A stretch of DNA of 64,000 nucleotides from Pristiophorus japonicus (taxonomy: Eukaryota), in the NCBI RefSeq assembly GCF_044704955.1, contig NC_091999.1, positions 54,870,001 through 54,934,000 on the forward strand, in the 5' to 3' direction. The notes under the pieces were generated by a model, which was given only the letters and a program-made list of their open reading frames with translations, was not told the origin of the DNA and made no database searches. The translations under genes and the position numbers were made by a program. Positions 2,970 through 47,750 of this stretch are shown in pieces (positions within the stretch are counted from its first letter, which is position 1; each line of letters starts with the position of its first letter).

Positions 2970-3051
2970 CGGAGTCGGCAGGATTCAAATCTATGCAGGG
3001 AAACCCGAATGGATTTTTAGCCTATGGCCTTAACCAATGGGCCACGACTAC
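2970..3051 (-). pseudogene. tRNA-Ser pseudogene (AAA anticodon)
   Basis: Near-identical to the 568-648 copy, with the same box lesions. Confidence 0.85.
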
Positions 3052-3258
3052 TGGCTCGCTGACTTTTTTAATGTTACTCAGTTAAAACTCAACCATCCAT
3101 CTATGTGCAGCAGACGGCCACAGAATAGTGAAAAAGTCACCGTTTGCTAAAAATCTGGAAGAGGCTGTATTTTTGCTGCTCTATATTGCTCTGGAACATT
3201 TTAATATGAATCTATACCAAGAAACAGAAGCAAAATTCTGCCTTTTGTAAAATGCAGC

Positions 3259-3329
3259 CTCCCCATTAGGGAAATGAACCGTGGTGTCCCGTGTGAGAGG
3301 CGGGGATATTCACCATTTTCCCACGAGGA
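3259..3329 (-). pseudogene. tRNA-Asp pseudogene
   Basis: Homologous to 856-926 and further decayed. Confidence 0.8.
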
Positions 3330-4091: not shown

Positions 4092-4174
4092 TACCAGGAG
4101 TGGGGTTCGAACCCACGCGGGTATAAACCCATTGGATCTTAAGCCCAACGCCTTAACCACTCGGCCATCCTGGT
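4092..4174 (-). tRNA. TRL-TAA: tRNA-Leu(TAA), intact
   Basis: Perfect acceptor stem (ACCAGGA...TCCTGGT-A), CT-TAA-GA anticodon loop and GGTTCGAACCC B box. Confidence 0.92.
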
Positions 4175-4929
4175 GCCGTCAGCGATTGGATTCTGTCTAT
4201 GTGAGAATCTGGGCTTCAACTCCACCTCCACAGACACACACAAACACATCGGGTTTCAGGGAGTATTTGCGAACATTTTTCGGAATATTGACACGGGGGC
4301 AACTCTCCTATTCTTTTTCGAGTAATGCTCTGGGACCTCTCACAACCACCCGAGTGCGTAGACGGAGCTTCAATTTACCATTTCATCCGAAAGTCAACAG
4401 TTTCAACAATGCAAAATTCCCCAAATGCTGCAGTTGAGTGTTAGCCAAGATTATATGCTCAAGTCTCAGGAGTGCGACTTGAACACACAAACTCCTGATT
4501 CAGTCAAGAATGCTGCCACTGAACCAAAGCTGAGACAAACGTTCACAGCCATATTACTTTCCCCAAGTCTTTTTTTTAAGTTCCAAGACATACCAAATTC
4601 ATGGTGATGATTTCCACAGACAGTTGCACATACACATAGACATGTTTACAGATAGACAGACACAGAGACATACACACAAAAATTTACACGCACCAACGGA
4701 CATGCAAAGATGCCTTAGACATCTTGAGGGATAGACAGGCTGAATCACTGTCGCAACTTTTGCTGATTTTTGCGATTTTCTATCCGTATGTATAGTGAAT
4801 ATTGCAGATTAATGAAAGAAAGAAAATAGCGGCGGCATTGAAAGGTGTGGGACGTTGTTCCGTCTATCTCAGAATCAGTTTTGCAGGGACCTGGTTAAAT
4901 TGTCAAACAGAATGAAATATGCTGAGAAA

Positions 4930-5010
4930 CGGAGTCGGCAGGATTCAAATCTGTGCGGGGATTCCGAATGGATTTTTAGTCTATGGCCTTAACCAATGGG
5001 CCACGACTAC
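4930..5010 (-). pseudogene. tRNA-Ser pseudogene (AAA anticodon)
   Basis: Same lesions as 568-648. Confidence 0.85.
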
Positions 5011-5217
5011 TGGCTCGCCGCCTTTTTAAATGTTACTCAGTTAAAACTCAACCATCCATCTCTGTGCAGCAGACGGCCACAGAATAGTGAAAAAGTCACC
5101 GTTTGCTAACAATCTGGAAGAGGCTGTATTTCTGCTGCTCTATATTGCCCTGGAACTTTTTAATATGAATCGATACCAAGAAACAGAAGCAAAATTCTGC
5201 CTTTTGTAAAATGCAGC

Positions 5218-5288
5218 CTCCCCGTTAGGGAATTGAACCGTGGTCTCCCGTGTGACAGGCGGGGATATTCACCACTTTCCCACGAGAA
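5218..5288 (-). pseudogene. tRNA-Asp(GTC) pseudogene
   Basis: Near-identical to 856-926. Confidence 0.85.
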
Positions 5289-6476
5289 ATTGATGCGCAT
5301 GAGTTTTGTCAAAGCAATATTCGAGCTGTGAATAGAACTGGATACCATTAGAAGTCGACAGACACATTGCGAGACAGAGACAAACCGACAAACAGGGAGA
5401 GACAGACAGCGAGATCGAGACAATGAGAGACAGCAAGTGTGAGACTGAAAACGAGAGGCAGACTGAGTGAGAAAAAGACTCTGAAACACATACATCTAAA
5501 GAGATCTGTGTGTGTGATCTATAAAGAGAAAGAGGGAAAGATTGAGAGAAAGACAATCATAAAGAAAGTGACAAGGAGAGAGACAGATGGAGAAAGAGAG
5601 CGACAGATAGACAGAGAGACAAAGAAATAAAAAGAAAATGTTGGAAATTCTCAGCAGGTTAGAGACAGGAAGTACCAGCGACAGGCAAAGAGAGACAGGC
5701 AGGCAGAGACATAGATAGACAGAGATGATGGGAAAGAGTGAATCAGTCAGACAGAGACTGAGAGAATCCCATTGGAACACAACTGGACACCGTGAGAAAG
5801 AGACAGGCACATTGAGAGACAGAGAGGCAAACAGCAAAACAGGGAGAAACTGACAGCGAGGTAGAGACAGAGAGAGACAGAAAGTTTGAGACTGAGAGTT
5901 AGGGTCAGACTGAGTGAGGCAAAGACTCAAACACATACATATACAGAGATGTGTTTGTGTGATTTATAAAGAGAGGGAGGGAAAGAGTGAGAGAAAGACA
6001 GGGACAAGGAGAGAGACAAAGAGGGAGACAGATAGAGAGAAAATAAATAGAGAGAGAGAGACATCGAGACAAAAACAGAAAATGATGGAAATACTCAACA
6101 GGGACGAGCAGAGACAGGCAAAGACATAGATGATGGGAAAGAACGAGACAGTCAGACAGTTGGAACAGAACTGGATCCTGTGTGAAGGAGACAGATTGAG
6201 AGACAGAGACAGAGACAAACAGAGAAACAGGGACAGACAGACAGAGTGAATCAGAGAGAGGCATACTGAGAGAGACAAAAACTCAAACACACAAATACAT
6301 ATACAGCTCTCTAAAGACAGAGCGAGAGGCAGAGACTGAGCGATACAGATACATTTCACAATTTCATTTCATTATCTGCTCAGATTGTCACCGAGCTACA
6401 GAAAAATGCAAATGCAACAGATGAAAATCAGTTATCACTGAGCAGAATGGGAGAAATCACTGTTTAATTAAGTAAT

Positions 6477-6558
6477 TACCAGGAGTGGGGTTCAAACCCA
6501 CGCAGGTATAAACCCATTGGATCTTAAGCCCAACGCCTTAACCATCGGCCAACCTGGT
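6477..6558 (-). pseudogene. tRNA-Leu(TAA) probable pseudogene
   Basis: The B box reads GGTTTGAA and there is a 1-nt deletion in the D-loop relative to the 4092 copy. Confidence 0.8.
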
Positions 6559-7313
6559 GCTGTCAGCTATTGGATTCTGTCTATGTGAGAATCTGGGCTT
6601 CAACTCCACCTCCACAGACACACACAAACACATCGGGTTTCAGGGAGCATTTCCGAACATTTTTCGGAATATTGACACGGGGGCAACTCTCCTATTCTTT
6701 TTCGAGTAATGCTCTGGGACATCTCACAACCACCTGAGTGCGCAGACGGAGCTTCAATTTAACATTTCATCCGAAAGTCAACAGTTTCAACAATGCAAAA
6801 TTCCCCAAATGCTGCAGTTGAGTGTTAGCCAAGATTATATGCTCAAGTCTCAGGAGTGCGACTTGAACACAAAAACTCATGATTCAGTGAAGAATGCTGC
6901 CACTGAACCAAAGCTGAGACAAAAGTTCACAGCCATATTACTTTCCCAAGTCTTTTTTTTAAGTTCCAGGACATACCAAATTCATGGTGATGATTTCCAC
7001 AGACAGTTGCACATACACATAGACATTTTTTACAGATAGACAGACACAGAGACACACACACAAAAATTTACAAGCACCAACGGACATGCACAGATGCCTT
7101 AGACATCTCGAGGGATAGACAGGCTGAATCCCTGTCGCAACTTTGGCTGATTTTTGCGATTTTCTATCCGTATGTATCGTGAATATTGCAGATTAATGAA
7201 AGAAAGAAAATAGCGGCAGCATTGAAAGGTGTGGGATGTTGTTCCGTCTATCTCAGAATCAGTTTTGCAGGGATCTGGTTAAATTGTCAAACAGAATGAA
7301 CTATGCTGAGAAA

Positions 7314-7395
7314 CGGAGTCGGCAGGATTCAAATCTATGCGGGGAAACCCGAATGGATTTTTAGTCTATGGCCTTAACCAATGGGCCACGACTAC
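7314..7395 (-). pseudogene. tRNA-Ser pseudogene (AAA anticodon)
   Basis: Same lesions as 568-648. Confidence 0.85.
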
Positions 7396-7602
7396 TGGCT
7401 CGCTGCCTTTTTAAATGTTACTCAGTTAAAACTCAACCATCCATCTCTGTGCAGCAGACGGCCACAGAATAGTGAAAAAGTCACCGTTTGCTAAAAATCT
7501 GGAAGTGGCTGTATTTTTGCTGCTCTATATTGCTCTGGAACTTTTTAATATGAATCTATACCAAGAAACAGAAGCAAGATTCTGCCTTTTGTAAAATGCA
7601 GC

Positions 7603-7673
7603 CTCCCCGTTAGGGAATTGAACCGTGGTCTCCCGTGTGACAGGCGGGGATATTCACGACTTTCCCACGAGGA
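7603..7673 (-). pseudogene. tRNA-Asp(GTC) pseudogene
   Basis: Homologous to 856-926. Confidence 0.85.
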
Positions 7674-8117
7674 ATTGATGCGCATGGGTTTTGTCAAAGC
7701 AATATTCGAGCTCTGAATAGAACTGGACACCATGAGAATGCTATGGGACCTTTCACATCCACCCGAGTGTGCAGATGAAGCTTCAATTTAACATTTCATC
7801 GGAATGTGAACAGCTTCAACAATGCAAAATTCCCCAAGCACTGCATTTGAGTGTCAGCCAAGATGACGTGCTCAAGTCTCAGGAGTGCGACTGACACACA
7901 CTACCTCCTGATTCAGTCGAGAATGGAGCCACTGAAAAAAAGCCGATACCAAAGATCACAACCGTATTATTTTCCCGAAGCTTTTTAAAATTTCCAGGAC
8001 GCACCAAATTCATGGTGATGATTTCCATAGACAGTTGCACATACACAGAGACATGCATACAGACAGACATACACAGACACACACACACACAATAACCAAA
8101 AATATACACGCATCAAC

Positions 8118-8812
8118 ATAGAAACATAGAAACAAATAAATTAGTTGCAGGAGTAGGCCATTCGGCCCTTCGAGCCTGCACCATCATTCAATAAGATCAT
8201 GGCTGATCATTCAACCTCAGTACCCCTTTCCTGCTTTCTCTCCATACCCCTTGATCACTTTAGCCGTAAGGGCCATATCTAACTCCGTTTTGAATATATC
8301 TAACGATCTGGCCTCAACAACTTTCTGCGGTAGAGAATGCCAGAGTGAAGAAGTTTCTCCTCATTTCGGTCCTAAATACCTTACCACTTAATCTTACACT
8401 GTCACCCTTGGTTCTCGAATTCCACAGCAATGGGAACATTCTACCCGCCTCTAACCTGTCCAATCTCGTCAGAATTTTATATATTTCTATGGGAGCGCCT
8501 CTCATTCTTCTAAACTCCAGTGGATACCAGCCCAGTTGATCCAGTCTCTCCTCATATGTCAGTCCTGCCATCCCGGGAATCAAGCTGGCGAATCTTCGCT
8601 GTACTCCCTCAATAGCAAGGACGTCCTTCCTCAGATTGTGAGAACAAAACTAAACACAATATTCCAGGTGTGACCCCACCAAGGCTCTGTACAACTGCAG
8701 TCAGACCTCCCTGCTCCTGTACTCAAATCACCCAGCTATGAAGGCGAACATGCCATTTGCCTGCTTCACCTGCGTGCCAACTTTCACTGACTGATGTACC
8801 ATGACACCCAGA
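8118..8812 (-). mobile_element. 5'-truncated CR1 LINE (3' end of ORF2 plus UTR) inserted in the tRNA array
   Basis: ORF 8314-8583 (LEFRRMRG..IEIYKIL..FRTEMRRNFF) is the CR1 RT C-terminus. There is a (GTTTCTAT)n 3' tail at ~8118-8133. Confidence 0.9.
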
Positions 8813-8963
8813 TCAAGATATACACAGAGTGCCTTATACAAATAGATGGATCGACAGGCAGGTTCACTGTCGCTACTTTGGCTGCCTTTTGTTCCATCTA
8901 TCTCAGAATCAGTTTTGCATGAACCTGGTTAAATTATCAAACAGAATGAAATATGCTGAGAAA

Positions 8964-9045
8964 CGCAGTCGGCCGGAATCAAATCTGCACGGGGAAACCC
9001 CAATGGATTTTCAGTCCATCGTCTTAACCACTCGGCCACAACGAC
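8964..9045 (-). pseudogene. tRNA-Ser pseudogene (anticodon loop CT-GAA-AA)
   Basis: Ser-type anticodon stem and variable arm (GGGG-TTT-CCCC) are intact; the T-arm is broken. Confidence 0.8.
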
Positions 9046-9264
9046 TGGTCCGCTGCCTCTTTAAATGTTACTCAGATAAAACTCAGTCATCCATTTCTGT
9101 GCAGCAGACGGCCACAGAATCCTGAAACAGTCTCCGTTTGCTAAAAATCTGGAAGTAGCAATCTGATCTTGCTGTATTTTTAATGTTCTATATACTCTGG
9201 AACTTTTCAACATGAGTCGATACCAAGAAACAAAAGTAAAACTTTGTATATTTGAAACAACTGC

Positions 9265-9336
9265 CTCCTCGTCGGCGAATTGAACCCCAGTCTCCCGCAT
9301 GACACGCAGGGATACTCACCACTATACTAACGAGGA
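9265..9336 (-). tRNA. TRD-GTC: tRNA-Asp(GTC), best-preserved copy (T-stem mismatches; may be a pseudogene)
   Basis: TCCTCGTTAGTATAGTGGTGAGTATCCCTGCGTGTCATGCGGGAGACTGGGGTTCAATTCGCCGACGAGGAG. Confidence 0.65.
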
Positions 9337-10048
9337 ACTGACAGATATTGGCTCTGGAATCGAGATGTGAACAGAACTGGACACCATGAGAAGCCGACCG
9401 TCGTATTGAGAGACAGAGACAAACCGACAAACAGGGAGAGACAGACAACGAGATAGAGACAACGAGAGACAGAAATTATGAGTCTGAGGCAGACTGAGTG
9501 AGAAAAAGACTCAAATACAAACATATACAGAGATGTGTGTGTGTGATTTATAAAGAAAGAGAGGGAAAGAGTGAGAGAAATACAATGATAAAGACAGTGA
9601 CAAGGAGAGAGACAGATAGCGAGAGAGAGATAGAGACAAAAAATGAAAATGATTGAAATACTTCTCAGGTTAGAGACAGGGACGAACAGAGGCAGGCAAA
9701 GACATGGTCAGACAGAAATGATGGGAAAGAGAGAGCCAGTCAGACAAAGAGTCTGAGAGAATCCCATTGGGACATACGTGGACACCGTGAGAAAGAGACA
9801 GATTGAGAGACAGAGACAAATCGAGAAACAGGGACAGATAGATTGAGACAAAGACTCAAACATACAAACGCATACACAGCTCTCGAAAGAGAGAGAGAGG
9901 CAGAGACCGAGCGACACAGATACATTTCACAATTTCATTTCATTATCGGCTCAGAGTGTCACATAGGTACAGAAAATTGCAGATTCAACAGATGAAAATC
10001 CGGTATCACTGATCGGAATGGGAGGAAATCCGTGTTAAATTAAAGAGA

Positions 10049-10130
10049 TACCAGGAGTGGGGTACAAACCCACGCGGGAAATGTCCATTGAATTTTAAAG
10101 CCACCGCCTTAACCACGCGGCCATCCTGGT
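10049..10130 (-). pseudogene. tRNA-Leu pseudogene
   Basis: Acceptor stem is retained; T-loop and anticodon stem are mutated. Confidence 0.8.
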
Positions 10131-10824
10131 CCTGTCACAATCTGGATTCTGTCTCTGCGAGAATCTGGATTCAACCCCACTCCCACAGACACACACATAC
10201 ACATCGTTTTTCAGTGAGCATTTACGAACATTTTTAGTAATATTGACACGGGGGCAACTCTCCTATTCTTTTTCGAGTAATGCTCTGGGATGTTTCACAT
10301 CCATACGAGGGTGCAGACGGAGCTTCAATTTAACATTTCATCCGAACGTCAACAGCTTCAACAATGCAAAATTCCCCAAGTGCTGCACTAGAGTGTTAGC
10401 CAAGATTATATGCTTAAGTCTCAGGAGTGGGAATTGAACACACATACTCCTGATTCAGTCGAGACTGCTGCCACTGCAACAAAGCCGATACCAAAGTTCA
10501 CAACAGTATTATTTTTCCCAATTCTTTTTTATAAGTTCCAGGACATACCAAATTCATGGTGGTGATTTCCACAGACAGTTACACGCACCAACGGAGATGC
10601 ACCGATGCCTTAGACATATAGAAGGATAGGCAGTCTGAATCACTGTATAAACTTTGACAGCTTTTTGAGTTTTTCTATCCGTATGTATCTTTAATATTGC
10701 AGATTAATAAATATCAGAAAGAGATGTCAGTGTTGAAAGGTGTGGGATGTTATTCCACCTATCTCAGGATCAGTTTTGTAGAGACATGGTTAAATTGTGA
10801 AATGCAATGAAAAATGCTGGGTAT

Positions 10825-10906
10825 CGAAGTCTGCAGGATTCGAACCTGCATGGGGAAAACTCAATGGATTTCGAGTTCATCGCCTTAACCACTCGGCCAC
10901 GACTAA
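10825..10906 (-). pseudogene. tRNA-Ser(CGA)-like, degenerate
   Basis: A and B boxes are intact and the loop reads CT-CGA-AA, but the acceptor and anticodon stems have mismatches. Confidence 0.75.
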
Positions 10907-11125
10907 TGCATTTCTGCCTCCTTGAACGTTACGCAGAAACAACTCAGTCATCCATCTCTGTGCAGCAGACGGCCAAAGAATCATGAAAAAGTCTCCGTTT
11001 GCTCAAAATCAGGAAGAGGCAATCTCCTCTACCTGTATTTTTACAGTTCTATATTGCTCTGGAACTTTTTAATATGAATCTCTTCCAAGAAACAGAAGTA
11101 AAATTCAACATTTTGAAACAACTGC

Positions 11126-11196
11126 CTCCCCGTCGGGGAATTGATCCCCGGACTCCTCATGACAGGCGGGGATACTCACCACTTTACAAACGAGAA
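11126..11196 (-). pseudogene. tRNA-Asp(GTC) pseudogene
   Basis: Aligns to tRNA-Asp; the B box reads GGATCAATTCC. Confidence 0.8.
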
Positions 11197-12402
11197 ACTG
11201 ACGAGCATCAGTTCTGTCAGAGCAGGAATCGAGTTGTGAATAGAATTGGACACCATGAAAAGTCGACAGACACATTGAGAGACAGAGGAAAACGACAAAC
11301 AGGGAGAGACAGACAGCGAGATAGAGACAACGAGAGACAGAAAGTGTGAGACTGAGAAGGAGAGGCAGACTGAGTGAGAAAAAGACTCAAACACATATAT
11401 ATACAGAGGTCTGTGTGTGTGATCTATTAAGAGAGAGAGGGATAGAATGAGAGAAAGACAATGATAAATACAGTGACAAGGAGAGATACAGATAGAGAGA
11501 GAGAGATAGAGACAAAAGCAGAAAATGATGGAAACTCTTATCAGGTTAGAGACAGGGACTAACAGAGACAGACAAAGAGAGACAGACAGGCAGAGACATA
11601 GACAGACAGAGATGATGGGAAAGAGTGAGACAGTCAGAAAGAGAGACTGAGAGAATCCGATTGGAACAGAACTGGACACCGTGAGAAAGAGAGAGACACA
11701 TTGAGAAACAGAGACAAACAGGGAAACAGGGAGTGACAGAAAGTGAGATAGAGACAGAGAGAGACAGAAAGTTTGAGACTGAGACGGAGGGTCAGACTGA
11801 GTGAGACAAAGACTTGAAAACATACATACACAGAGATGTGTTTGCGTGCTCCAAAAAGAGAGGGAGGCAAATAGTGATGGAATGAAAAGAAAAAGCCAGG
11901 GACAAAGAGAGAGACAAAGAGGGAGACAGATAGAGAAAAAGACAGATAGAGAGAGAGACAAAGAGGCAAAAACAGAAAATGATGGAAATACTCATCAGGT
12001 TAGAGGCAGGGAGTAATAGAGACAGGCAAAGACATGGACAGACAGAGATGATGGAAAGAGAGAGACAGTCAGACAGATAGTCTGAGAGAATCCCTTTGGA
12101 ACAGAACTTGACACCGTGAGAAAGAGACAGATTGAGAGACAGAGACAAACAAAGTAAAAGGGACAGACAGAGTGAATCAGAGAGAGGCAGACTGAGAGAG
12201 ACAAAGATTCAAATACACAAACACATACACAGCTCTCTAAAGGGAGAGAGAGGCAGAGACTTAGCGACACAGATACATTGCACAATTTCATTTCATTATC
12301 TGCTCAGAGTGTCACCGAGTTACAGAAAAATGCAAATGCAACAGATGAAATTCGGGTATCACTGAGCAGGATGGGAAAACAATCTTTGTTTAATTAAGCA
12401 AT

Positions 12403-12485
12403 CACCAGGACTGGGATACGAACCCACGAGCGTAAAAACCCATTGGATCACCAGCCCAACGCCTTAACCACTCGGCCATCCTGGT
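12403..12485 (-). pseudogene. tRNA-Leu-derived pseudogene (anticodon GGT, G73, internal T5)
   Basis: Leu body with a CT-GGT-GA loop, TTTTT in the variable arm and T-loop TTCGTAT. Confidence 0.8.
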
Positions 12486-12984
12486 CCCGTCAGCAATTGG
12501 ATTCTGTCTCTGTGAGAATCTGGGCTTCATCTCCACCCCCACAGCCACACACATGCACATCGGGATTCAGGGAGCATTTCCGATCATTTTTAGCAATATT
12601 GACACGGGGGCAACTCTCCTATTCTTTTTGAAGTAATGCTCTGGGACCTCTCACATCCACCCGAGTGCGCAGACGGAGCTTCAATTTAACATTTCATCCG
12701 AATGTCAACAGCTTCAACAATGCAAAATTCCCCAAGTCCTGCAGTTGAGTGTTAGCAAAGATTATATGCTCAAGTCTCAGGAGTGCGACTTGAACACACA
12801 AACTCCTGATTCAGTCGAGAATGCTGCCACTGAACCAAAGCTGAGACAAAAGTTCACAGCCGTATTACTTTCCCCAAGTCTTTTTTTTTAAGTTCCAGGA
12901 CATACCAAGTTCACGGTGATGATTTCCACAGACAGTTGCACATACACAGAGACATATATACAGATAGACAGACACAGAGACACA

Positions 12985-15890
12985 GTCGATTCAATCTCTC
13001 CTCATATGTCAGTCCTGCCATCCCGGGAATCAGTCAGGTAAACCTTTGCTGCACTCCCTCAATAGCAAGAAAGACCTTCCTCAGATTACGAGACCAAAAC
13101 TGAACACAATATTCCAGGTGAGGTCTCACAAAGGTCCTGTACAACTGCAGTAAGACCTCTCTGCGCCGATACTCAAATCCCCTAGCTATGAAGGCCAACA
13201 TACCATTTGCCTTCTTCACTGCCTGCTGGAACTGCATGCCAGCTTTCAATGACTGATGTACCATGACACCCAGGTCTCGTTGCAGCTCCCGTTTTCCAAA
13301 TCTGCTGCCATACAGATAATATTCTGCCTTCGTGTTTTTGCCACTAAAGTGGATAACCTCATATTTATCCACATTATACTGCATCTGCCATGCATTTGCC
13401 CTCTCACCTAACCGGTCCAAGTCACCCTGCAGCCTCTTAGCGTCCTCCTCACAGCTCACACCGCCACCCTGTTAGTATCATCTGCAAACTTGAAGATATT
13501 ACACTCAATTCCTTCATCTAAATCATTAATGTATATTGTAAATAGCTGGGATCCCAGCACTGAGCGCTGTGGCACCCCACTAGTCACTGCCTGCTTTTCT
13601 GAAAAGGACCGTTTATCCCGACTCTCTGCATTCTGTCTGCCAACCAGTTCTCTATCCACGTCAGTACATTACCCCCAATACCATGTGCTTTAACTTTGCA
13701 CATCAATACGTGTGTGGGACCTTGTTGAAAGCCTTTTGAAAGTCCAAATACACCACATCCACTGGTTGCCCTTGTCATTATACTAGCTACATCCGCAAAT
13801 AATTCCAGAAGTTTTGTCGAGCTTGATTTCCCATTCATATATTCATGCAGCTTGGACCGATCCTGTCACTGCTTTCCAAATGCGCTGCTATTTCATCTTT
13901 AATAAATTGATTCGTACATTTTCCCCACTACTGATGTCAGGCTAACCGGTCTGTAATTATCCGCTTTCTATCTCCCTCCTTTTTTAAAATGTGGTGTTAC
14001 ATTATTTACCCTTCAGTTCATATGAACTGATCTAAAGTCGATAGACTGTTCGAAAATGATCATCCGCTATTTCTAGGGCCACTTCCTTAAGTACTTTCCA
14101 ATGCAGACTATCAGGCCCTGGGGATTTATCGGCCTTCAATCCCATTTATTTCCCGAACACAATTACCTGACTGATAAGGATTTCCTTCAGTTCCTCCTTC
14201 TCGCTAGATCCTTGGTGCCCTAGTATTTCTGGAAGGTTATGCGTTTCTTCCATCGTGAAGACAGAACCAAAGTGCTTGTTCAACTGGTCTACAATTGCCT
14301 TCTTCCCCATTATAAATTCACCTGAATCTGATTGCAAGGGACCTACGTTTGTCTTCTCTAATCTTTTTGTCTTCACATATCTATCGAACTTTATTATGTT
14401 CCCAGCAAGATTCCTCTCATAATCTATGTTCCCCCTCCTAATTAAACCCTTTGTCCTCCTCTGCCGAATTCTAAATTCCTCCCAGTCCTCAGGTTGAAGC
14501 TTTTTCTGGCCAATTTATATGCCTCTTCCCTGGATTTAACACTATCCTTAATTTCCTTTGTTAGCCACGGTTGAGCCACATTCCCCGTTTTATTTTTACT
14601 CCAGACAGGGAAATACAATTGTTGACGTTCATCCATTTGATCTTTAAATGTTTGCCATGGCCTATCCACCTTCAACCCTTTAAGTATCATTCGCCAGTCT
14701 ATTCTAGCAAATTCACGCCTCATACCATCGAAGTTATCTTTCCTTAAATTCAGGACCCTAGTCTCTGAATTAACTGTGTCACTCGCCACCTTAATGAAGA
14801 ATTCTACCTTATTATGGTCACTCTTTCCCAAGGGGCCTCGCACAACAAGATTGCTAATTGGTCCTTTCTCATTACACACCACCCAGTCTAGGATGGCCAG
14901 CCCTCTAGATGATCCCTCGATATACTGAGTGAGAAAACCATCCCTAATACGCTCGAGGAAATACTCCTCCACCATATTGCTACCTGTTTGGTTAGCCCAA
15001 TCTACATGTAAAGTAAAGTCGCCCTTGATAACAGCTGTATCTTTATGGCACGCATCCCTAATTTCTTGTTTGATGCTGTCCCCAACCTCACTACTACTGT
15101 CTGCTGATCTGTACACAACTCCACTTGCGTTTTCTTCCCTTTGGTATTCCGCAGCTCCACCCATTCATATTCCACATCATCCAAGCTAATGTCGTTCCTT
15201 ACTATTGCCTTAATTTCCTCACTATTGCCTTAATTTCCTCTTTAACCAGCAACGCTACCCTACCACCTTTTCATTTCTGTCTATGCTTCCTGAATGTTGA
15301 ATTCCCAGCCTTGGTCACCCTGGAGCCATGTCTCCGTGATGTCAATTATTTCATATTCAGTAATTGCTGCTTGTGCAGTTAATTCGTCCAGCTTATTACG
15401 AATACTCCTCGCAATGAGGCACAGAATCTCCAGGCTTGTTATTTTAACACACGTTGTCCCTTTAGAATTTTGCTGTAAAAGGCCCTATTTGATTTTTGCC
15501 GTGGGTTTCTCTGCCCTCCACCTTTTCTTTTATTCTTTCACTTCTGCGCCCATTCTACTTCCCTCTGTCTCCCGTCGCCCTGCCATATTACTTTAAACCC
15601 TCCCCAGAAACGCTAGCATGCACTCCACCTTGAACATTGGTTCTGGTCCTGCCCAGGTGCAGACCGTCCGGTTTCGTTCTGGTCCCACCTCCTGCAGAAC
15701 CGGTTCGAAAGTCCCAGAACTTGAATCCCTCCCATCTGCACCACACTTCAAGCCACGGATTCATCTGAGCTATCCTGCGATTCCTGCTCCGACTAGCAGG
15801 TGGCGCTGGTAGCAATTATGAGTTTGCGACCTTTGAAATCCTACTTTTTAATTTAACTCCTAGCTCCCTGAATTCAGCTTGTTGGTCCTC
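12985..15890 (-). mobile_element. Decayed CR1 LINE (ORF1 SGNH-esterase end, AP endonuclease, RT), 3' end missing
   Basis: 15588-15815 encodes MNPWLEVWCRWEGF..PDGLHL (CR1 ORF1). 14442-15164 is the endonuclease (GDF..WANQ, LGKSDHN). 13456-13659 has SGVPQ.SVLG..FADDT. Confidence 0.92.
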
Positions 15891-16075
15891 AGACACATTG
15901 AGTCAGAGACTCAAACACGTAAAGATATACAGAGCTCTCTAAAGACATAGAGTGAGAGGCACTTCACAATCCCATTTCTTGGTCAGTTGAGAATGTGACA
16001 GAGTTACAGTTTCAACAGAAGGCATTAGGGTATCAATGAGCAGGATGGGAGAAAATCGGTGTTAAATTCAAGAGT

Positions 16076-16158
16076 TACCAGGAGTGGGGTTCGAACCCAC
16101 GTAACTATAAACCCATTGGATCTTAAATGCAACGACTTATACACTCGGCCATTCTGGA
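16076..16158 (-). pseudogene. tRNA-Leu(TAA) pseudogene
   Basis: B box is intact; D, anticodon and variable stems are disrupted. Confidence 0.8.
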
Positions 16159-16931
16159 CTTGTGAACCTTCACATTCTGTCTCTGTGAGAATCTGGGCTT
16201 GAGCACCACCCTCACAGACACACGCATACACACAGGTTTTCAGTGAGCATTTCAGAATATTTATATAAAAGTGACATGGGGGCAACTCAGTACTCTTTAT
16301 CGAATAATGCTGTCGGAACATTCACATTCACCCGAGAGAGCAGATGGAGCTACAATTTAACATTTCATCCGAAAGTCACCATCTTCAACAATGCAAAATT
16401 CCCCAAGTACTGCACTTGAGTGTCAACCAAGATTATATGCTCAAGTCTCAGGAGTGGGACTTGAAGTCGAAAATGCTGTCGCTGAAGCAAAGCCGATATC
16501 AAATGTCACAACCGTATTATTTTCCCCAAATCTTTTTTAAAAGTTCCAGGACATACCAAATTCATGGTGATGATATCCGCAGACAGTTGCGCATACACAG
16601 AGACATATACACAGATAGACAGACACAGAGACACACACACAGATAGACAGACACAGAGACACACACGCATACATAACCAAAAATATAGATGCACCAATGG
16701 ACATACACAGAGTGCCTTAGACATATAGAGGGATAGACAGGCTGAATCACTGTCGCGAATTGAGCTGATTTTTGCGTTTTTCTATCCGCATGTATCGTAA
16801 ATATTGCAGATTAATGAAAATGAGAATAACATGTCAGTGTTGAAAGGTGTGGGACGTTATTCCATCCAACTCAGGATCCGTTTTGCAGGGACCTGGTTAA
16901 AGTCTGAAATTGAATGAAAAATGCTGAAATC

Positions 16932-17013
16932 CGTAGTCGGCAGGATTCGAACCTGCGCGGGTAAACTCCCATGGATATCTAGTCCATTGCCTTAACCACT
17001 CGGCCACGACTAC
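16932..17013 (-). tRNA. TRS-AGA: tRNA-Ser(AGA), nearly intact
   Basis: GTAGTCGTGGCCGAGTGGTTAAGGCAATGGACTAGATATCCATGGGAGTTTACCCGCGCAGGTTCGAATCCTGCCGACTACG. Acceptor, anticodon and T stems are perfect, it has G73, and a T5 terminator lies ~11 nt downstream. T37 and a weakened variable arm are atypical. Confidence 0.75.
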
Positions 17014-17231
17014 TGCGTCTGTGTGTTTTTAAATGTTACTAAGATATAACTCAATCATCCATCTCTCTGTATCAGAACACCACAGAGTCCTGAAAAAGTC
17101 TCCGTTTCCTAAAAATATGGAAGAGCCAATATCGTCTTGCTGTATTTTTACTCTTCTATGTTGCTCTGGAACTTTTAATATGAATCTATACCGAATAACA
17201 GAAGTACAATTCTACATTTCGAAAATGCTTC

Positions 17232-17276
17232 CTCCCGCATGACAGGTGGGGATACTCACGACTATACTAAAGAGGT
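17232..17276 (-). pseudogene. tRNA-Asp remnant with internal deletion of the T-arm
   Basis: The 5' half is retained; the deletion lies between two CTCCC microhomologies. Confidence 0.7.
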
Positions 17277-17639
17277 ACTGACGGGTGTAGATTTTGAGAC
17301 AGCAGGAATCGAGCTGTGAAAAGAACTAGACACCATGAGAAAGAGACAGACACATTGAGAGACAGATACAAAAACAGGAACAGGGAGAGACAGACAGCGA
17401 GCTAGAGAAATAGAGAGAGAGCAAGTGTGAGACTGAGAGGGATAGGCAGACTGAGTGAAACAAAGACTCAAACACACACATACACAGATATGTGTGTGTG
17501 TGTGCTCCATAAAGAGAGGGAGGCAAAGAGTATACCGTTGATGGTTAACATAGAAAATAAATGATTATGAAATGAAAAGTGTCCTTATATTTTAACAAGT
17601 TCTTTGCTGTCAGACTAACATTAACCTGGCATTTACAGA

Positions 17640-18090
17640 GAGCAGAACTTTGCACAGAATTCTCAGTGTAATATACAGACCAGAACTGTGCATAATATTC
17701 TCAGTGCGATATGGGGACCAGAACCATGCACATTATTCTAAGAGTGATATGGGGACCTGAACTATGCGTACTATTCTAAGTATGATATGGAGACCAGAAC
17801 TTTACACCGTATTCTAAGTATGAGATGGAAACCAGAACTTGAAACAATATTCTAAATGTGATATGGAGAACAGAACTGTGTACAGTATTCTAACTGTGAT
17901 ATGGAGAACGGAACTGTGCATACTATTTTAAGTATGAAATGGAGACCAGAACTTTAGACACTCTTCTAAGTATGAGATGGAAATCAGATTTGTGAACAAT
18001 ATTCTAAATGTGATAAGGAGACTAGAACGATGCGCAGTATTCTAAGTATGATATGGAAACCACAACTGTACACAGTACTCTAAGTGTTGT
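17640..18090. repeat. ~38-bp minisatellite (ATTCTAAGTATGATATGGAGACCAGAACTGTGCACAGT-like), ~12 copies, downstream of Cmu1
   Basis: Directly visible tandem units. Confidence 0.9.
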
Positions 18091-18165
18091 CTAACCAAAT
18101 TTCTACACAAGTTGAACATAATTCCTCACCTTATCATAGTTTGCCCTGTAACCCATATCACTAAC

Positions 18166-18465
18166 CTCGCATTGTGATGGCCCAGACCGATACACCACGT
18201 CGAACCTCACAGTAGATTGTGCTGTTCCCCACATCTGTCTCGTTGATGGTTAACTGGCTGCTCTGGGTGTAGGTTCCCTTCTTGGTGAGCATTGATGGGT
18301 AGGTCTTCAATCCAGTGGTGATTGGCACTTTATCTTTCTTCCAGGAAATGCTGGTTATATCGGGGGAGTAGTCCATCGCCAAACAACCATATGTGATGGA
18401 GCCATCGGTGCTTGGTTGTTCACAAGAGGAGAGCAGGGCGTAGAGGGTGGGGGGTGGCGGTGTTA
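18166..18465 (-). CDS. IGHM: IgM heavy-chain constant exon Cmu1 (shark type), intact, 300 nt
   Basis: [90 protein letters not shown]. It has the C1-set C/W/YxC pattern and closely resembles horn shark Cmu1. Acceptor TTCTTTCCCAG, donor G|GTTAG, phase 1/1. Confidence 0.95.
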
Positions 18466-25200: not shown

Positions 25201-25754
25201 TTAATTTAACTGTGTCCTAGCGTGAAATATGTTAATTTTCCAGTTCTTAAGTACAGTAGCAGCTCACGTATTGAATCTGAGCGTTCGGAAACATTCGGTC
25301 AGTAGATGACAATGCAATTTCATTAAAAAAAACTTAAAATTCCTTAAGCTTATTTACTGATCGCTAAGCTTTCTGTTTTGTGCCTACAATGTTCTTTTAA
25401 ACATATTTATACACAATGTTTGCATTCGATCAGAAAAACTGCAGCAATTAGAGATCACCAAAATTAAACATTGCAGAAACATCAAACAGTGTAAAAACCA
25501 TAACGTATTTAGAGTAACCCAGGCACATGTCTCGTCAGCAAATAAATACCAAATCACATCAACAACATTTTCAGTGGAGAAACAGTTGAATTCTATAATC
25601 ACTTTGCAGCAGAATCACATTGAACATTGCAAAAAATCTAAAAACAAAATCCACCGAACCCAAATTTCAGTGAACAAAATAATTATTAAAATAAACAGAA
25701 ATATAAAATAAAGACACAAATACAAGAGTCACTGAATGAGTGAATGTTCCTTAC

Positions 25755-25804
25755 TTGCAGTCACCGTCACCATGGTCCCTTGTCCCCAGTAGTCCATTTC
25801 GTTA
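25755..25804 (-). CDS. IGHJ: JH segment (possibly germline-joined D2-JH): NEMDYWGQGTMVTVTA
   Basis: WGxG motif. Splice donor A|GTAAGG is in phase with Cmu1. Confidence 0.95.
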
Positions 25805-25832
25805 CACAGTGAGACACGTCATGTCAAATACT
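25805..25832 (-). promoter_or_regulatory. 12-spacer RSS 5' of JH
   Basis: Read on +: CACAGTG (25805-25811), 12 nt, TCAAATACT (25824-25832). No nonamer-like sequence at 22/23 nt. Confidence 0.85.
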
Positions 25833-26157
25833 CCGGTGGACTGTTAACTGTAAAATACAGAGATTAAATTCCACCCAGCTCTAAAAACCCGATTCCGACT
25901 CCTGTAAGAGTGACTCAGCGAGATATTTCATTTTGTACCGTTCATTATATTTACAAAAATGATTGGAATACTTCTGAAGCATCTGTGCAGATTCAGCATG
26001 GCAATCAATAGTAATAAAGAAGAAAACATTTTTATGCATTTAAATATATATATAGATAGATAAATATTTTACTTCTATTTATTTTTATTTAAGCCTCAGT
26101 TCCTTCGACGCTCCTGGCGTTTTAATGATCGCAGGTTTGACCAAACTCCCTGTCTGG

Positions 26158-26240
26158 GGTTTTTGTATAGAGAGCTCGCTCTGTATACCACCGTGGCCCA
26201 CTGCTGTAGTCCCACAGTGACAGGAACCCGCGCATATACT
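26158..26240 (-). other. DH segment GGACTACAGCAGTGGGC (26196-26212) with 5' 12-RSS and 3' 22-RSS (shark D1 type)
   Basis: 5' RSS read on +: CACAGTG-12-GCATATACT (26213-26240). 3' RSS read on -: CACGGTG-22-ACAAAAACC (26195-26158). All three D reading frames are open. Confidence 0.93.
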
Positions 26241-26639
26241 GCACTCACTCTCTGCTCAGTACTGACTCTCAACATTCACGTCAAATAGACATTCACTTCA
26301 CATGCACATTCGCTTCTGATCAAGTTTAGAATTTAGCCAACAGTTTGCACAACACACTAGAGAGTAAACACAGTTCTACCCAACTCCCTGCATGTACCAG
26401 GCACAGTGAATCGAGTATCATTTCCAGCTCTGCAATTGCTGACACTTTAACATTAAACAGGAGCACAATCAAACCTCCCCTCCGTCGATGGGTTAGTGTG
26501 TTAGATTTTCCCATTTAATTCTCAGTGTGTTAGTTTTGTAAGAAGCGGTGTATGGTATTGTTCTGTACACTGCGGGTAACATTGCATTTGACACAATTAC
26601 TGACCGTTATGATGGAAGTTGTTGAATTCCGCCTCGATC

Positions 26640-26678
26640 TGTTCTTGTACGGGTCCAGCCCTGGTTCATCTCGCTGTG
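26640..26678 (-). promoter_or_regulatory. VH 23-spacer RSS
   Basis: CACAGCG-23 nt-ACAAGAACA immediately after YYCARD. Confidence 0.9.
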
Positions 26679-26984
26679 GGTCCCTTGCACAGTAATAGAT
26701 GGCGGTGTCTTCGCTCTTCAGTTTCTTCATGTCCAACGTGAAGATATTGTTTGAAGTGTCTTTGGACGCAGTAAATCGGCTCTCAATCCCTGGGACGTAA
26801 TACTTGCTCGATGGACTGTCGTAGTAAACCAGCCACTCTAGCCCCTGTCCGGGAACCTGGCGGACCCAGTACATCGAGGTGCCACCAAGATTGAAGCCGC
26901 TGGTTTTACAGGTCAGTCTCAGGGAGCCTCTGGGAATCCTGGTCTCTGCCTCGGACTGAGTCAACACCACATCCGAGTGGACAC
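26679..26984 (-). CDS. IGHV: IgM VH exon, intact
   Basis: [65 protein letters not shown], a classical shark mu-type VH. Acceptor TTTTACAG at 26985. Confidence 0.97.
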
Positions 26985-27110
26985 CTGTAAAAATAATCAA
27001 AAACTCCGAGGATCAATCCTGGTGAAATCATTCCTGACTCTGTAACATTCCAGAGAGAGACTAACACTGAGACAGTAACAGTGAGAGATTGGAGGATAAA
27101 AACTACTCAC

Positions 27111-27156
27111 GGGAAAAGAAAGCCAGCAACAGACTGAGCGCAATCGCCGACCTCAT
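27111..27156 (-). CDS. IGHV: VH leader exon (MRSAIALSLLLAFFS-R)
   Basis: 46-nt hydrophobic exon with a GTGAGT donor and a 126-bp intron; joins V in frame. Confidence 0.93.
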
Positions 27157-27244
27157 CCTCCTGGCAATGTGTGGTGAATGGTTCTGGCAAGAACTCACTG
27201 GGCAAACCCACTCCCGGACTGTTGTATTGCGGTCCCAGTGACAG

Positions 27245-27332
27245 CAGTTAAATACCCGGGAGCTGGGGGCGAGGTTACAGACGCCGCCCATTGATTCCCT
27301 GATAGGGGCGGTTTCTGGAACCACGTCACACC
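27245..27332 (-). promoter_or_regulatory. VH promoter: TATA-like TATTTAA (27254-27248), GC box (27305-27311), CRE/TCR-decamer-like TGTGACGTGG (27330-27321); no octamer
   Basis: Motifs are seen ~90-175 bp upstream of the ATG. Shark IgH promoters are known to lack the octamer and carry a TCR-like decamer. Confidence 0.65.
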
Positions 27333-28865
27333 TTCCACATCACCAACAGAATGGACTCACATCTGGACTGTAAATTAAATATTTTTATTTCCTCACTGTT
27401 TCACAGGAGATGTGGATCTCTGAGATTGAATTACATTATCAGGTTCTAAAGACACTGCCAGTTTGTGTTTCTCTATCTCCCGCTATCTATCCATGCATCT
27501 GTACCAATAACTTGTCCCCTATAATCTGAACTGTTATCACTCTATTTAACCGAGTGCGGGAGATGAGTAATGTGATTCTGTTTACGGTGTAAGTGGCTAA
27601 AGCTACACTTTTGGTCTGGAGATGAAATGATACTCTTCACATTATACAATTGTCTCTCATTGCATTTCACGAACTGCCCCTGAGTCTGTGACCCTAAGTC
27701 CGCCGTTTGTAAAATAAGCTGTAAAATAAGTCCGCTTGACTGATGATTAAGGAGTGAGTTGACGGAGACACATAAGAATGTGGGGCCCGCCCGCTTCAAA
27801 CCTGCGTTTCATGAGAGAAGCTTGTGAATCAGAACCGATAATGTGATCAGCAAACCTCGACATCCAAATCCTTGCTGCTAACTTTAATAGCGACCGAATG
27901 TGTAACAGACACGGGGAACATGAACACGGTGTATGAGGAGATAGCGGTATGTTACAGAATATCACAGGAATAAATGCTTAATCTGCAGCAGAAACAGATC
28001 ACAATCTGGACATTTCACCACCCAATGGTAGCCGGGCTATGAGAGGGGTTGTTCAGGGATCCAAATCAGCTCAAATTACACCGCAAACTGCGCGGCTACT
28101 AATCAGGAATAATGGAGAGATTAGTTTAGACCAGGCACAAAATTCGGTGAGAATATTAAAGAAGTGCAGCTGGCACTTCTCTGTGAGAATATTCAAGGCA
28201 ATACAACTTGTTTTAGTTACTTTGCGAATCCCAGTCATCACATTACAGTGTGGGGCGGTACCATTAAACCTCTCTCCAGCACTTTATGCTGTACTGAATA
28301 AAGGGACTGAATAATCTGGAATGTTCTTTATTTGGAAATGGTTTTCATTAGATACTGTGTGGATCAATTCATTATTTTCCGATCCTATTTTATAATATGG
28401 TGAGCATGGAATTTACGGAAAATCATTCTTGAGATGTTATACCATGTAAAATGTTTCATATTTTAAAAGTTCGACTGAATAATTTAATGTTCAAATAGTT
28501 AAATATCATCTTCCTCCCATTCTTGTTCACGCTAATCTGACCCACACAATATTTAGCAGTAGCCCAACCGACTGCCGTCAGCGAGCCTCGAACACCAGTG
28601 TCATTTATAGGAAGCATGTGGGGTTTTGTGCAGTCCATCAAAGGTCTCTTTTCTCACTACTGACCGCATGCCTGGAAGCCAACTTCAATATCTTTACATT
28701 GTCAAAAGACCTATTTATATACACATTTACGCAGTAACAGTGCTGGAGATAAGTTTAATTTTTTCGTTGTGTAAATGTGTGTAACTATTCCCATATCTCA
28801 GGAAAGGAAATATATCCAATGTCTCAGACACTATGTCAATAGCAGCAGTCAGCTGGAGTATCAGT

Positions 28866-36333: not shown

Positions 36334-39095
36334 AACATAAGAACATAAGAATTAGGAACAGGAGTAGGCCATCTAGCCCCTCGAGCCTGCACCGCCATTC
36401 AACAAGATCATGGCTGATCTGGCCGTGGACTCAGCTCCACTTACCCGCCCGCTCCCCATAACCCTTAATTCCCTTATTGGTTAAAAATCTATCTATCTGT
36501 GATTTGAATACATTCAATGAGCTAGCCTCAACTGCTTCCTTGGGCAGAGAATTCCACAGATTCACAACCCTCTGGGAGAAGGGATTCCTTCTCAACTCGG
36601 TTTTAAATTGGCTCCCCCGTATTTTGAGGCTGTGCCCCCTACTTCTAGTCTCCCCGACCAGTGGAAACAACCTCTCTGCATCGATCTTGTCTATCCCTTT
36701 CATTATTTTAAATTTTTCTATAAGATCACCCCTCATCCTTCTGAACTCCAACGAGTAAAGACCCAGTCTACTCAATCTATCAGCAGAATGTAACCCCCTC
36801 ATCTCTGGAATCAGCCAAGTGAATCGACTCTGTACCCCTCCAAAGCTAGTATATCCTTCCTTAAGTAAGGTGAACAAAACTGCACGCAGCACTCCAGATG
36901 CAGCCTCACTAATACTCTATACAGTTGCATCTTTTGTACTCTCTGCTTTTGTACTCCATTCCTCTCGCAATGAAGGCCAACATTCCATTTGTCTTCCTGA
37001 TTACCTGCTGCACCTGCAAACTAAATTTTTGGGATTCTTGCACAAGGACCCCCAGGTCCCTCTGCACCGCAGCATGTTGTACTTTCTCCCCATTCAAATA
37101 ATTTTCCCTTTTACTGTTGTTTTTCCCAAGGTGGATGACCTCACACTTTCCGACATTGTATTCCATCTGCCAAACCTCAGCCCATTCGTTGAACCTATCT
37201 AAATCTCTTTGCAGCCTCTCTGTGTCCTCTACACAACCCGCTTTCCCACTAATCTTTGTGTCATCTGCAAATTTTGTTACACTACACTCTGTCCCCTCTT
37301 TCATGTCATCTATGTATGTTGCAAACAGTTGTAGTCCCAGCACCGATCCCTGTGGCACACCACTAACCACCGATTTCCAACCCGAAAAGGATCCATTTAT
37401 TCCGACACTCTGCATTCTGTTAGCCAGCCAATTCTCGATCCATGCTAATACATTTCCTCTGACTCCGCGTACCTTTATCTTCTGCAGTAACCTTTATGCG
37501 TGGCACCTTATTGACTGCCTTTTGGGAATCTAAATACACCACATCCATCGGTACATCTCTATCCACCATGCTCGTTATATCCTCAAAGAATTCCAGTAAA
37601 TTAGTTAAACATGATTTCCCCTTCATGAATCCATGTTGTGTCTGCTTGATTGCACTATTTCTATTTAGATGTCCCGCTATTTCTTCCTTAATGATAGTTT
37701 CAAGCATTTTCCCCACTAAAGATGTTAAACTAACCGGCCTATTTTTACCTGCCTTTTGTCTGCCCCCTTTTTTTTTAAACAGAAGCGTTACATTAGCTGC
37801 TTTCCATTCCGATGGTACCTCCCCAGAGTCCAGAGAATTTTGGTAGATTATAACGAATGCATCTGCTATAACTTCCGCCATCTCTTTTAATACTCTGGGA
37901 TGCATTTCATCAGGGCCAGGGGACTTGTCTACCTTCAGTCCCATTAGCATGTCCAGCACTACCCCCTTGTGATAGCGATTGTCTCAAGGTCCTTCGTTCC
38001 CACATAGCTGTGACCAGCAATTTTTGGCATGGTTTTTGTGTCTTCCACTGTGAAGCCCGAAGCAAAATAATTGTTTAAGTTCACAGCCATTTCCACATTT
38101 ACCGTTATTAAATCTCCCTTCTCATCTTCTAAGGGACCAACATTTACTTTAGTCACTCTTTTCCGTTTTATATATCTGTAAAAGCTTTTACTATCTATTT
38201 TTATGTTTTGCGCAAGTTTACTTTTGTAATCTATCCTTCCTTTCTTTATTGCTTTCTTAGTCATTCTTTGCTGCCGTTTAAAATGTTCCCAATATTCTAG
38301 TTTCCCACTAACGTTGGCCACATTATACGCATTGGTTTTTAATTTGATACTCTCCTTTACTTCCTTGGTTATCCACGGCTGGTTATCCCTTATCTTACCA
38401 CCCTTCTTTTTCACTGGAATACATTTTTGTTGAGCACTTTGAAAGAGCTCCTAAAAAGTCCTCCACTGTTCCTCAATTGTGCCACCCTTTAGTCTGTGTT
38501 CCCAGTCTAATTTAGCCAACTCTGCCCTCATCCCACTGTAGGCCCCTTTGTTTAAGCATAGTATGCTCGTTTGAGACACTAATTCCTCACCCTCAAACTT
38601 AGTTACAAATTCAACCATACTGTGAACACTCATTCGGAGAGGATCTTTTACTAGGGGATCGTTTATTATTCCTGTCTCATTGCACAGGACCAGATCGAAG
38701 ATAGCTTGCTCCCTTGTAGGTTCTGTAACATAATGTTCGAAGAAACAATCCCGTATGCATTCTATGAATTCCTCCTCCAGGCTACCCCGTGCGATTTGAT
38801 TTGACCAATCGATATGTCGGTTAAAATGCCCCATGATTACTGCCGTTCCTTTTTCACATGCCTCCATTATTCCCTTGATTATTGCCCGCCCCACCGTGAA
38901 GTTATTACTTGGGGGCCTATAACCTACGCCCACCTGTGACTTTTTCCCCTTACTATCTCTAATCTCCAACCACAATGATTCAACATTTTCTTCATTAGAG
39001 CCAATCTTGTCTCTCACAACTGTCCTGATATCATCCTTTATTAACAGAGCTACCCCACCTCCTTTCCCTTCTTGTCTATCTTTCCGAATTGTCAG
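36334..39095 (-). mobile_element. Relatively young 5'-truncated CR1 (ORF2 endonuclease-RT with few frameshifts)
   Basis: Five consecutive ORF fragments (39128-36431) with YRPP, KSPGPD, RPVSLTS, QHGF, SGVPQGSVLG and FADDT; (TTCTTATG)n tail at ~36334. Confidence 0.95.
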
Positions 39096-39904
39096 CTGAG
39101 CTGAAATGGCCTCCTTCTGTGCTGTCAATTTCTAAGATTCTATGATAGAGTGTATCGGCTCTCACTAAGCAGAGGTCCTAGATTTACAAGCATTGGAAAA
39201 AGATCTAGAGCGGAGAAGAGCAGAATTTGTTTTCACTCAGAGTCAGCAGAGGCATGATGGAACGAATGGCTTCCTTTATGCCGTAATTGTCTGTGACACC
39301 ATGAAATCACAGCAGATTGTTTCTCAGTTATTACTCCACGACACCATGTCTCTGTTCATATTGCACGAGACCTTGTCACTATTTATATTACATTAGACCC
39401 TCTCTCTGTTTATATTACGCTAGACCCTATCTCTGTTTATATTACACTAGAGCCTGTCTATATATATTGTATGAGATCCTGTCTCTGTTTATATTACCCT
39501 CGACCCTGTCTCTGTTTATATCACACTCGACACTGTCGCTGTTTATATTGCACCAGACGCTGTCTCTGTTTATATTGCACTATACCCTGTCTCTGTTTAT
39601 ATTACACTGGACCCTGTCTCTGCTTATGCTACACCATACCCTCTCTGTATATAATATACTAGACCGTATCTCTGTTTATATACCGTGTCTCTGTATACAT
39701 TAGATTAGACCCTATCTCTGTTTATATTACACCAGACCCTGTCTCTGTTTATATTAGACTAGACCATGTCTCTGTTTATATTATCCTAAACCATGTCTCT
39801 TTATATATTACACTAGACCCTGTCTCTGTTTATATTAGACTAGACCCTGTATCTGTTATATCAGACAAGACCATGTCGCTTTATATATTACACGAGACCC
39901 TGTT

Positions 39905-46824: not shown

Positions 46825-47750
46825 GAACACAAGAATATAAGAATATAAGAAATAGGAGCAGGAGTAGGCCATTTGGCCCCACGAGCCTACTCTGCCGTTT
46901 AATAAGTTCATGGCTGGTCTAATCATGGACTCAGCTCCAATGCCCAGCCCGCTTCCCCTAACCCTTTATTCCCTTATCGCTCAAAAAATCTGTCCATCTC
47001 TGCCTTACATATATACAATGACCCAGCCTCCACAGCTCTCTGTTGCAGAGAATTCCGCAGATTTACAACCCTCTGAGAGCAGAGATTCCTCCTCATCTCA
47101 GTTTTAAATGGCAGCCCCTTATTCTGAGATGAAGCCTCCTAGTTTTAGTTTCCCCTGTGAGTGGAAATGTCCTCTCTGCATCCACCTTCTCGGGCCCCCC
47201 ATTATCTTATATGTTTCGCTAAGATCATCACTCATTCTTCTGAACTCCAACATGTATAGGCCCAATCTAGTCAACTTTTATTCATACATCAACCCCATCT
47301 TCTCCGGAATCAACCCAATGAACCTTCTCTGAAAAGTCTCCAATGCAAGTATAACCTTCCTTAAATCCGGCGAACAAAACTTTATGCAGTACCCCAGATG
47401 TGGCCTCACCAATACCCTGTAGAGTTGTAGCAGGAATTCTCTACTTTTGTACTCCATCCCCTTTGCAATAAAGGCCAACATTCCATTTGCCTTCCTGATT
47501 ACTTGCTGTACCTGCACAGTAACATTTTGTGTTTCATGCACAACTACACCCAGGTCCCTCTGTACCGCAGCACCTTTCAATTTTTCTCCATTTAAATTAT
47601 AATTTGCTTTATTATTCTTTTCTGCCAAAGTGGATAATCTGAGATTTTCACCATTATACTCCATCTGCCAAATTTTGTTCACTCACTTAGCCTGTCTATA
47701 TCCCCTTGCAGATTTTTTTAGTGTCTTCCTTACCATTTGCTTTTGCACAC
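46825..47750 (-). mobile_element. CR1 3' fragment
   Basis: ORF 47278-47682 (QRDLGV..KANGMLAFIA..LYRVLVRPHL.YC). Confidence 0.9.

Follow-up and report, generated by a model that had tools for sequence, protein, structure and literature searches.

The IgM genes of sharks are arranged in clusters that hold a VH segment, two D segments, and one JH segment (PMC2435157). In many of these clusters, some or all of the segments are already joined in the germline, as VD-J, VD-DJ, or VDJ (PMC5192425, PMC4279169), and germline-joined forms of shark immunoglobulin (Ig) genes have been attributed to the activity of RAG in germ cells (PMC2193156). In the mouse, events between the 5′ recombination signal (RSS) of a D segment and the RSS of JH are mostly hybrid joints, which are often processed and arise at a frequency about 1000-fold below that of normal D-J joins (PMC2194253).

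In a 64,000-nucleotide stretch of DNA from Pristiophorus japonicus, hereafter called the window, we found an IgM cluster that is written on the minus strand in the order leader, VH with a 23-RSS, D with a 12-RSS on its 5′ side and a 22-RSS on its 3′ side, a gap of 391 bp, a 50-nt JH with a 12-RSS, and Cmu1. The gap from V to D measures 467 bp, and the one of 391 bp runs from D to J. The features of the cluster and of the DNA downstream of it are as follows.

27111 to 27156, minus strand: leader exon, 46 nt, with the ATG at 27156 and then a GT donor
26679 to 26984, minus strand: VH exon of the IgM type, intact (Cys, Trp, and YYCARD), with its coding end at 26679
26640 to 26678, minus strand: 23-spacer RSS of V, made up of CACAGCG, 23 nt, and ACAAGAACA
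26213 to 26240, minus strand: 12-spacer RSS on the 5′ side of D, made up of AGTATATGC, 12 nt, and CACTGTG
26196 to 26212, minus strand: D segment of the D1 type, 17 nt, stop-free in all 3 of its 3 frames
26158 to 26195, minus strand: 22-spacer RSS on the 3′ side of D, made up of CACGGTG, 22 nt, and ACAAAAACC, which is a perfect nonamer
25833 to 26157, minus strand: spacer between the D 3′ RSS and the J RSS, putatively former D1-D2 intersegmental DNA
25805 to 25832, minus strand: 12-spacer RSS on J, made up of AGTATTTGA, 12 nt, and CACTGTG, directly abutting J; putatively the former 5′ RSS of D2
25755 to 25804, minus strand: JH, 50 nt, reading NEMDYWGQGTMVTVTA, with a GT donor at 25754
18166 to 18465, minus strand: Cmu1 exon, intact (TPPPPTLY...CEVRRG...), with an AG acceptor and a GTTAGT donor
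854 to 18165, minus strand: DNA downstream of Cmu1, with a tandem repeat, a tRNA-gene array, and LINE fragments

The spliced leader and VH exons translate into one open frame that starts with MRSAIALSLLLAFFSRVHS and ends with ...YYCARD. In a protein search, the best matches of the VH protein were a VH of Heterodontus francisci (75%) and VH of catshark and bamboo shark (72%). With VH of horn shark, catshark, and bamboo shark as its best matches, it is therefore a shark VH of the IgM type, from a species that the protein collection does not itself contain at high identity. Much of the arrangement is that of the canonical VH-D1-D2-JH-Cmu cluster of horn shark and nurse shark, which has the same leader, the same 23-RSS on VH, and the same pair of a 12-RSS and a 22-RSS around D1. 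Segment spacing of 250–500 bp, a J-Cmu1 intron of about 7 kb, and Cmu1 itself are likewise shared with the canonical shark minicluster (PMC2435157, PMC5192425). The canonical cluster, however, carries a D2 flanked by a 12-RSS on both sides, which is absent here. Moreover, its JH has a 23-spacer RSS, whereas the J of this cluster has a 12-RSS, and it possesses four Cmu together with secretory and membrane exons, whereas Cmu1 alone was found within the window. No description of a germline IgM cluster with one D and a 12-RSS on J was found in the openly accessible literature searched, which lists VD-J, VD-DJ, VDD-J, and VDJ forms.

A first-pass annotation of this DNA had read the signals as V-23 / 12-D-22 / 12-J, with neither a second D nor a 22/23-spacer RSS on J, and this reading was correct in every detail. 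Across the 64 kb and on both strands, the RSS on J is the sole 12-RSS that combines a perfect heptamer with a nonamer match of at least 6/9; block shuffles lead one to expect 0.1 such sites, versus the 1 observed. Its nonamer equals the nonamer of the 12-RSS on the 5′ side of D at 7/9 positions, and therefore both are one kind of 12-RSS. When nonamer matches were sought 21–24 nt upstream of the J heptamer, the best reached only 1–2/9, which excludes a 22/23-type RSS on J. A signal-sequence scan found neither a D nor an RSS in the spacer at 25833–26157 and no second D between D and J, and in a repeat search the V-D and D-J spacers showed no internal duplication in common. Nurse shark intersegmental primers (PMC2435157) were also compared with the window, where two had no match and one matched at chance level, the species being too distant from each other. 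About 150 bp past V, the V-D spacer contains a further site that resembles a 23-spacer RSS (26491–26529, minus strand; CACACTG, 23 nt, ACACTAACC), which sits within a short local repeat and may be due to chance.

We placed Logan contigs of four public runs on positions 25650–27250 of the window at 80% likeness. Two of these runs are P. japonicus DNA (X1 and X3), one is DNA of a related species (X9), and one is RNA-like and comes from a relative (X12). Contigs of X1 and X3 cover the whole of this stretch. One same-species short-read contig of 261 nt, at 25766–26026, spans J, the 12-RSS, and 190 nt of flank without gaps and at 95% identity. The 5′ ends of paralogous J segments read TAACGCTATGG and TTACGCAATGG, with the same length as TAACGAAATGG in the window and with point substitutions only, and these segments are J-like (AMDYW) from the fifth base onward. 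The flank at 25833–26157 is matched at 84–95% identity by contigs of the same species and of two relatives. We found the same junction in several diverged short-read copies, and therefore it exists in data that are independent of the assembly. Since the layout recurs in paralogous contigs, it is old and amplified and marks a subfamily of clusters. The event had at first been taken as confined to this locus, which does not hold, as the paralogous contigs carry the same junction with point differences. An estimate from contig depth that about half of the J copies have this flank was dropped, because depth is unsuited to such counts. In two related species, the D1 homologue has one CAG missing (26199–26201, with the 3 nt left out at 26201), so that the length of D1 differs between species.

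A contig of X1/X3 points to the origin of the signal on J. It fits the window from 25805 upward, through the whole RSS, heptamer first, and on into the flank, and it departs exactly at the heptamer border, with 55–130 nt of unlike sequence where J starts in the window. Read on the minus strand, the departing end (a loose end of which only 30 nt are visible) gives GTACAGTGGGTGG and then CACAGCA. The first of these, 13 nt long and rich in G, resembles a D segment and has a core similar to that of D1; the CAC heptamer follows it, and the two together look like a D2 with its 3′ heptamer. The D2-like string of this paralogue does not occur anywhere in the window when up to 3 mismatches are allowed. 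From this one 30-nt loose end, we infer that the flank at 25833–26157 is homologous to D1-D2 DNA. Three contigs of X9, the run of the related species, carry J and diverge from the window at 25794, where they show a heptamer and then a spacer without a nonamer at 12 nt; this points to ordinary 23-RSS J segments in that species. A further X9 contig lies on 25860–25999 at 84% identity. The flank is thus conserved even though most J segments of that species are preceded by other DNA, a result that fits its being D1-D2 DNA. A separate DNA contig of X9, at 25794–25797, reads as a fully joined VDJ (TGTGCC...GGGCC and then ATGGACTAC) and comes either from a gene joined in the germline or from lymphocyte DNA in that run.

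The first-pass annotation had also proposed that the 5′ RSS of D2 is now attached to J. This is supported by the 7/9 likeness of the two nonamers and by the paralogous contig, in which the RSS continues into the D2-like segment. A paralogue with a D2-like segment behind a homologous RSS suggests that the one-D layout was derived by loss of D2. Most likely, J now bears what was once the 5′ signal of a D2 lost in the germline. Under a different reading, V23 / 12-D-22 / 12-J would be the primary layout, an old type of IgM cluster that never had a D2. TCR beta and delta do use an equal signal grammar. However, two-D clusters are reported for horn shark, nurse shark, and skates (PMC2435157, PMC5192425), and two D segments are therefore the likely ancestral state. 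The paralogue with its D2-like segment behind the homologous RSS also speaks against a primary one-D layout, as do the three J contigs of X9, which part from the flank close to the J 5′ end and have another signal there, and we consider such a layout improbable. Still less credible is an artefact, whether by collapse in the assembly or by a somatic V-D-DJ intermediate that came from lymphocyte DNA. Nurse shark lymphocytes do form V-D-DJ as a somatic intermediate (PMC2435157), and the exact letters of the window copy at 25799 are absent from the placed contigs. Yet the same junction stands in independent short-read contigs, at 95% identity and with substitutions that leave its length unchanged, whereas length differences and N additions would be expected of somatic joints. 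The 12-RSS-J layout is thus most likely an inherited germline layout, and neither an assembly artefact nor a somatic one, as judged from the contig sequences.

We propose that the ancestor was a canonical VH-D1-D2-JH cluster, in which a single recombinase-type deletion in a germ-line ancestor would have taken out D2, the 3′ 12-RSS of D2, the D2-J spacer, and the 23-RSS of J. This deletion would have left the 5′ 12-RSS of D2 directly on J, and the resulting one-D type of cluster would then have multiplied in the genome. Such an origin of the inherited L-VH(23)/(12)D1(22)/(12)JH/Cmu1 minicluster, by one recombinase-type deletion from VH-D1-D2-JH and later multiplication, is in our judgement probable. 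A paralogue in the X1 and X3 DNA is VD-joined, with 26212 joined to 26683 and two bases between them, which appears to show that germline joining happens in this genome. Together with the published germline joins, this paralogue makes a recombinase-made deletion the natural explanation.

The deletion could have taken either of two routes. In one, D2 and J would have formed a coding joint, with D2 trimmed to at most 4 nt. The other is a deletional hybrid joint. Here the two signals, the 12-RSS on the 5′ side of D2 and the 23-RSS of J, would have had the same orientation and obeyed the 12/23 rule, and the signal end of D2 would have been joined to the coding end of J, so that D2 and the J signal were deleted. 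From the fifth base, the window segment and its paralogues are a classical JH (xAMDYWGQG). The first 4 nt of the J segment match the 5′ end of D2 (GTAC) at only 2–3 of 4 positions, and no signature of a D2 core or of P or N nucleotides is readable in the joined segment. The lack of a positive D2 trace in the first four bases speaks for the hybrid joint. On the other hand, the J of the window seems to be 2 bases longer at its 5′ end than the right-aligned J of the X9 relative, and these two seeming extra bases hint at junctional processing and not at a precise swap. The J heptamer matches perfectly, and J-like sequence starts at base 3–5 of the segment. The rarity of events between a D 5′ RSS and the JH RSS in the mouse (PMC2194253) also bears on the choice of route. 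The earlier view of TAACGAAAT as a trimmed D2 plus N nucleotides does not stand, as this string is mostly J with point substitutions, and at most 2–4 nt of it could be non-J. We slightly favour the coding joint, at somewhat less than an even chance, and consider the hybrid joint somewhat less likely. The fuller account, by which a RAG hybrid joint in germ cells put the 12-RSS on J and was then fixed and amplified into a subfamily, is likewise tentative; to our knowledge, a DH-JH hybrid joint of the mouse type has never been reported as a fixed germline layout.

A deletion could also have come about without the recombinase, by slippage or unequal exchange between identical heptamers of D2 and J, which would have left J itself untouched. 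In its favour, CACTGTG, which stands before both D and J in this cluster, would be the heptamer of each partner, and the J character of the segment reaches nearly to the heptamer. However, 7 bases of homology are a poor substrate for such an event, and a precise event would not add the 2 extra 5′ bases that this J seems to have in comparison with the J of the relative. Moreover, recombinase-type germline joins of the kind found here, as in the VD joint, make germline RAG the simpler cause. We therefore regard an exchange between heptamers as unlikely and retain the recombinase-type deletion.

Among described forms, germline-joined shark Ig genes and a somatic intermediate of nurse shark come closest to this cluster. 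The germline-joined genes (VD-J, VD-DJ, VDD-J, and VDJ, and VJ in light chains) resemble it in the inherited loss of an RSS pair and of the DNA between its members (PMC2193156, PMC5192425). In the reviews searched, DJ joins in such genes appear only alongside a VD join, as VD-DJ. Here V and D1 are free and no D2 remnant is recognisable, and therefore the cluster differs from the listed germline-joined forms. The V-D-DJ ('1R') intermediate of nurse shark lymphocytes matches the cluster in the order of its elements and in the signals that it retains (PMC2435157), but it is transient, confined to single cells, and junctionally diverse, whereas the layout described here is inherited, multi-copy, and of fixed length. 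The inversional DH-JH hybrid joints of the mouse use the signal pair that the hybrid route would have used, namely the 5′ 12-RSS of DH and the 23-RSS of JH, and the chromosomal product of this route would be a 12-RSS on the coding end of J (PMC2194253). In contrast, the mouse joints are somatic only and often show loss of coding bases and P/N additions (PMC2194253).

By its spacers, V of this cluster could join D, and the 22-RSS of D could join J. With V-23, 12-D-22, and 12-J, a VDJ exon would therefore be made in two joins and with one D, not in three joins. The signal grammar of TCR beta and delta is V-23, 12-D-23, and 12-J, and IgNAR clusters are similar to it. The spacer logic is the same in that V pairs with D or J and the 3′ signal of D pairs with J, so that the TCR-beta-like RSS logic noted in the first-pass annotation applies, with 22 nt standing for 23. 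However, a TCR J carries FGxG and belongs to a TCR constant region, whereas the J found here is an Ig JH with WGQG upstream of Cmu1, and the cluster is therefore not a TCR. The same annotation had observed that direct V-to-J joining obeys the 12/23 rule. The spacers would indeed allow it, at the signal level. In TCR beta, direct V-J joining is blocked by the 'beyond 12/23' restriction. We computed that an untrimmed V-J join of this cluster is out of frame, and productive V-J joining would therefore depend on trimming.

In the RNA-like run X12, thousands of contigs lack the leader intron and have J joined to Cmu1 by splicing. Between V and J they contain 11–36 nt, in some cases with only a D1-like core. 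These contigs are rearranged transcripts of that relative and are no evidence that the cluster type described here, or this copy, is used.

The textbook shark IgM cluster has two D segments and uses three joins, and a one-D type, if common, would shift both the expected length of CDR3 and the number of joins for part of the repertoire of this species. With V and D1 free and D2 gone, the layout would represent a new form of germline-rearranged shark antibody gene, and it bears on the extent to which RAG has reshaped antigen-receptor loci in the germ line. If common, one-D clusters would also be a natural test of direct V-to-J joining in shark heavy chains. If the hybrid joint is true, RAG would here have altered the signal grammar of an antigen-receptor gene in nature and in heritable form, and an IgH cluster would have become TCR-beta-like and able also to make D-less V-J heavy chains.

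We found neither Cmu2-4 nor membrane exons in the approximately 18 kb downstream of Cmu1, up to the window start. No Ig constant-domain reading frame, and no similarity to Cmu1 or V, was present in 1–18160. A tandem repeat with a unit of about 50 bp follows Cmu1, at about 18075–17650. V, D, J, and Cmu1 of this copy are intact, but unless Cmu2-4 lie more than 18 kb away, it is probably a truncated representative of the subfamily that is not functional. With no Cmu2-4 nearby, the copy is therefore probably crippled and adds little by itself. It had been described earlier as a still-rearrangeable IgH; this holds for its signals, but not for a gene without Cmu2-4 within 18 kb downstream. The Ig octamer ATGCAAAT or its complement, with at most 1 mismatch, was not found within 700 bp upstream of the ATG (27157–27860). 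A TATTTAA box lies near 27250, and RNA contigs of the relative start covering this stretch near 27215.

Past the tandem repeat and on the same strand, nine tRNA genes (Asp-GTC, Leu-TAA, Thr-GGT, and Ser-AGA) form repeated units of about 2–4 kb. N runs at about 28.8 kb and 49.0 kb are assembly gaps or masked sequence. Elsewhere in the window, LINE-type reverse-transcriptase / endonuclease-like frames occur in several broken copies (13034–15164, 36431–39128, 47278–47682, and 55801–58083), and an open reading frame of 520 aa lies on the plus strand at 62263–63825.
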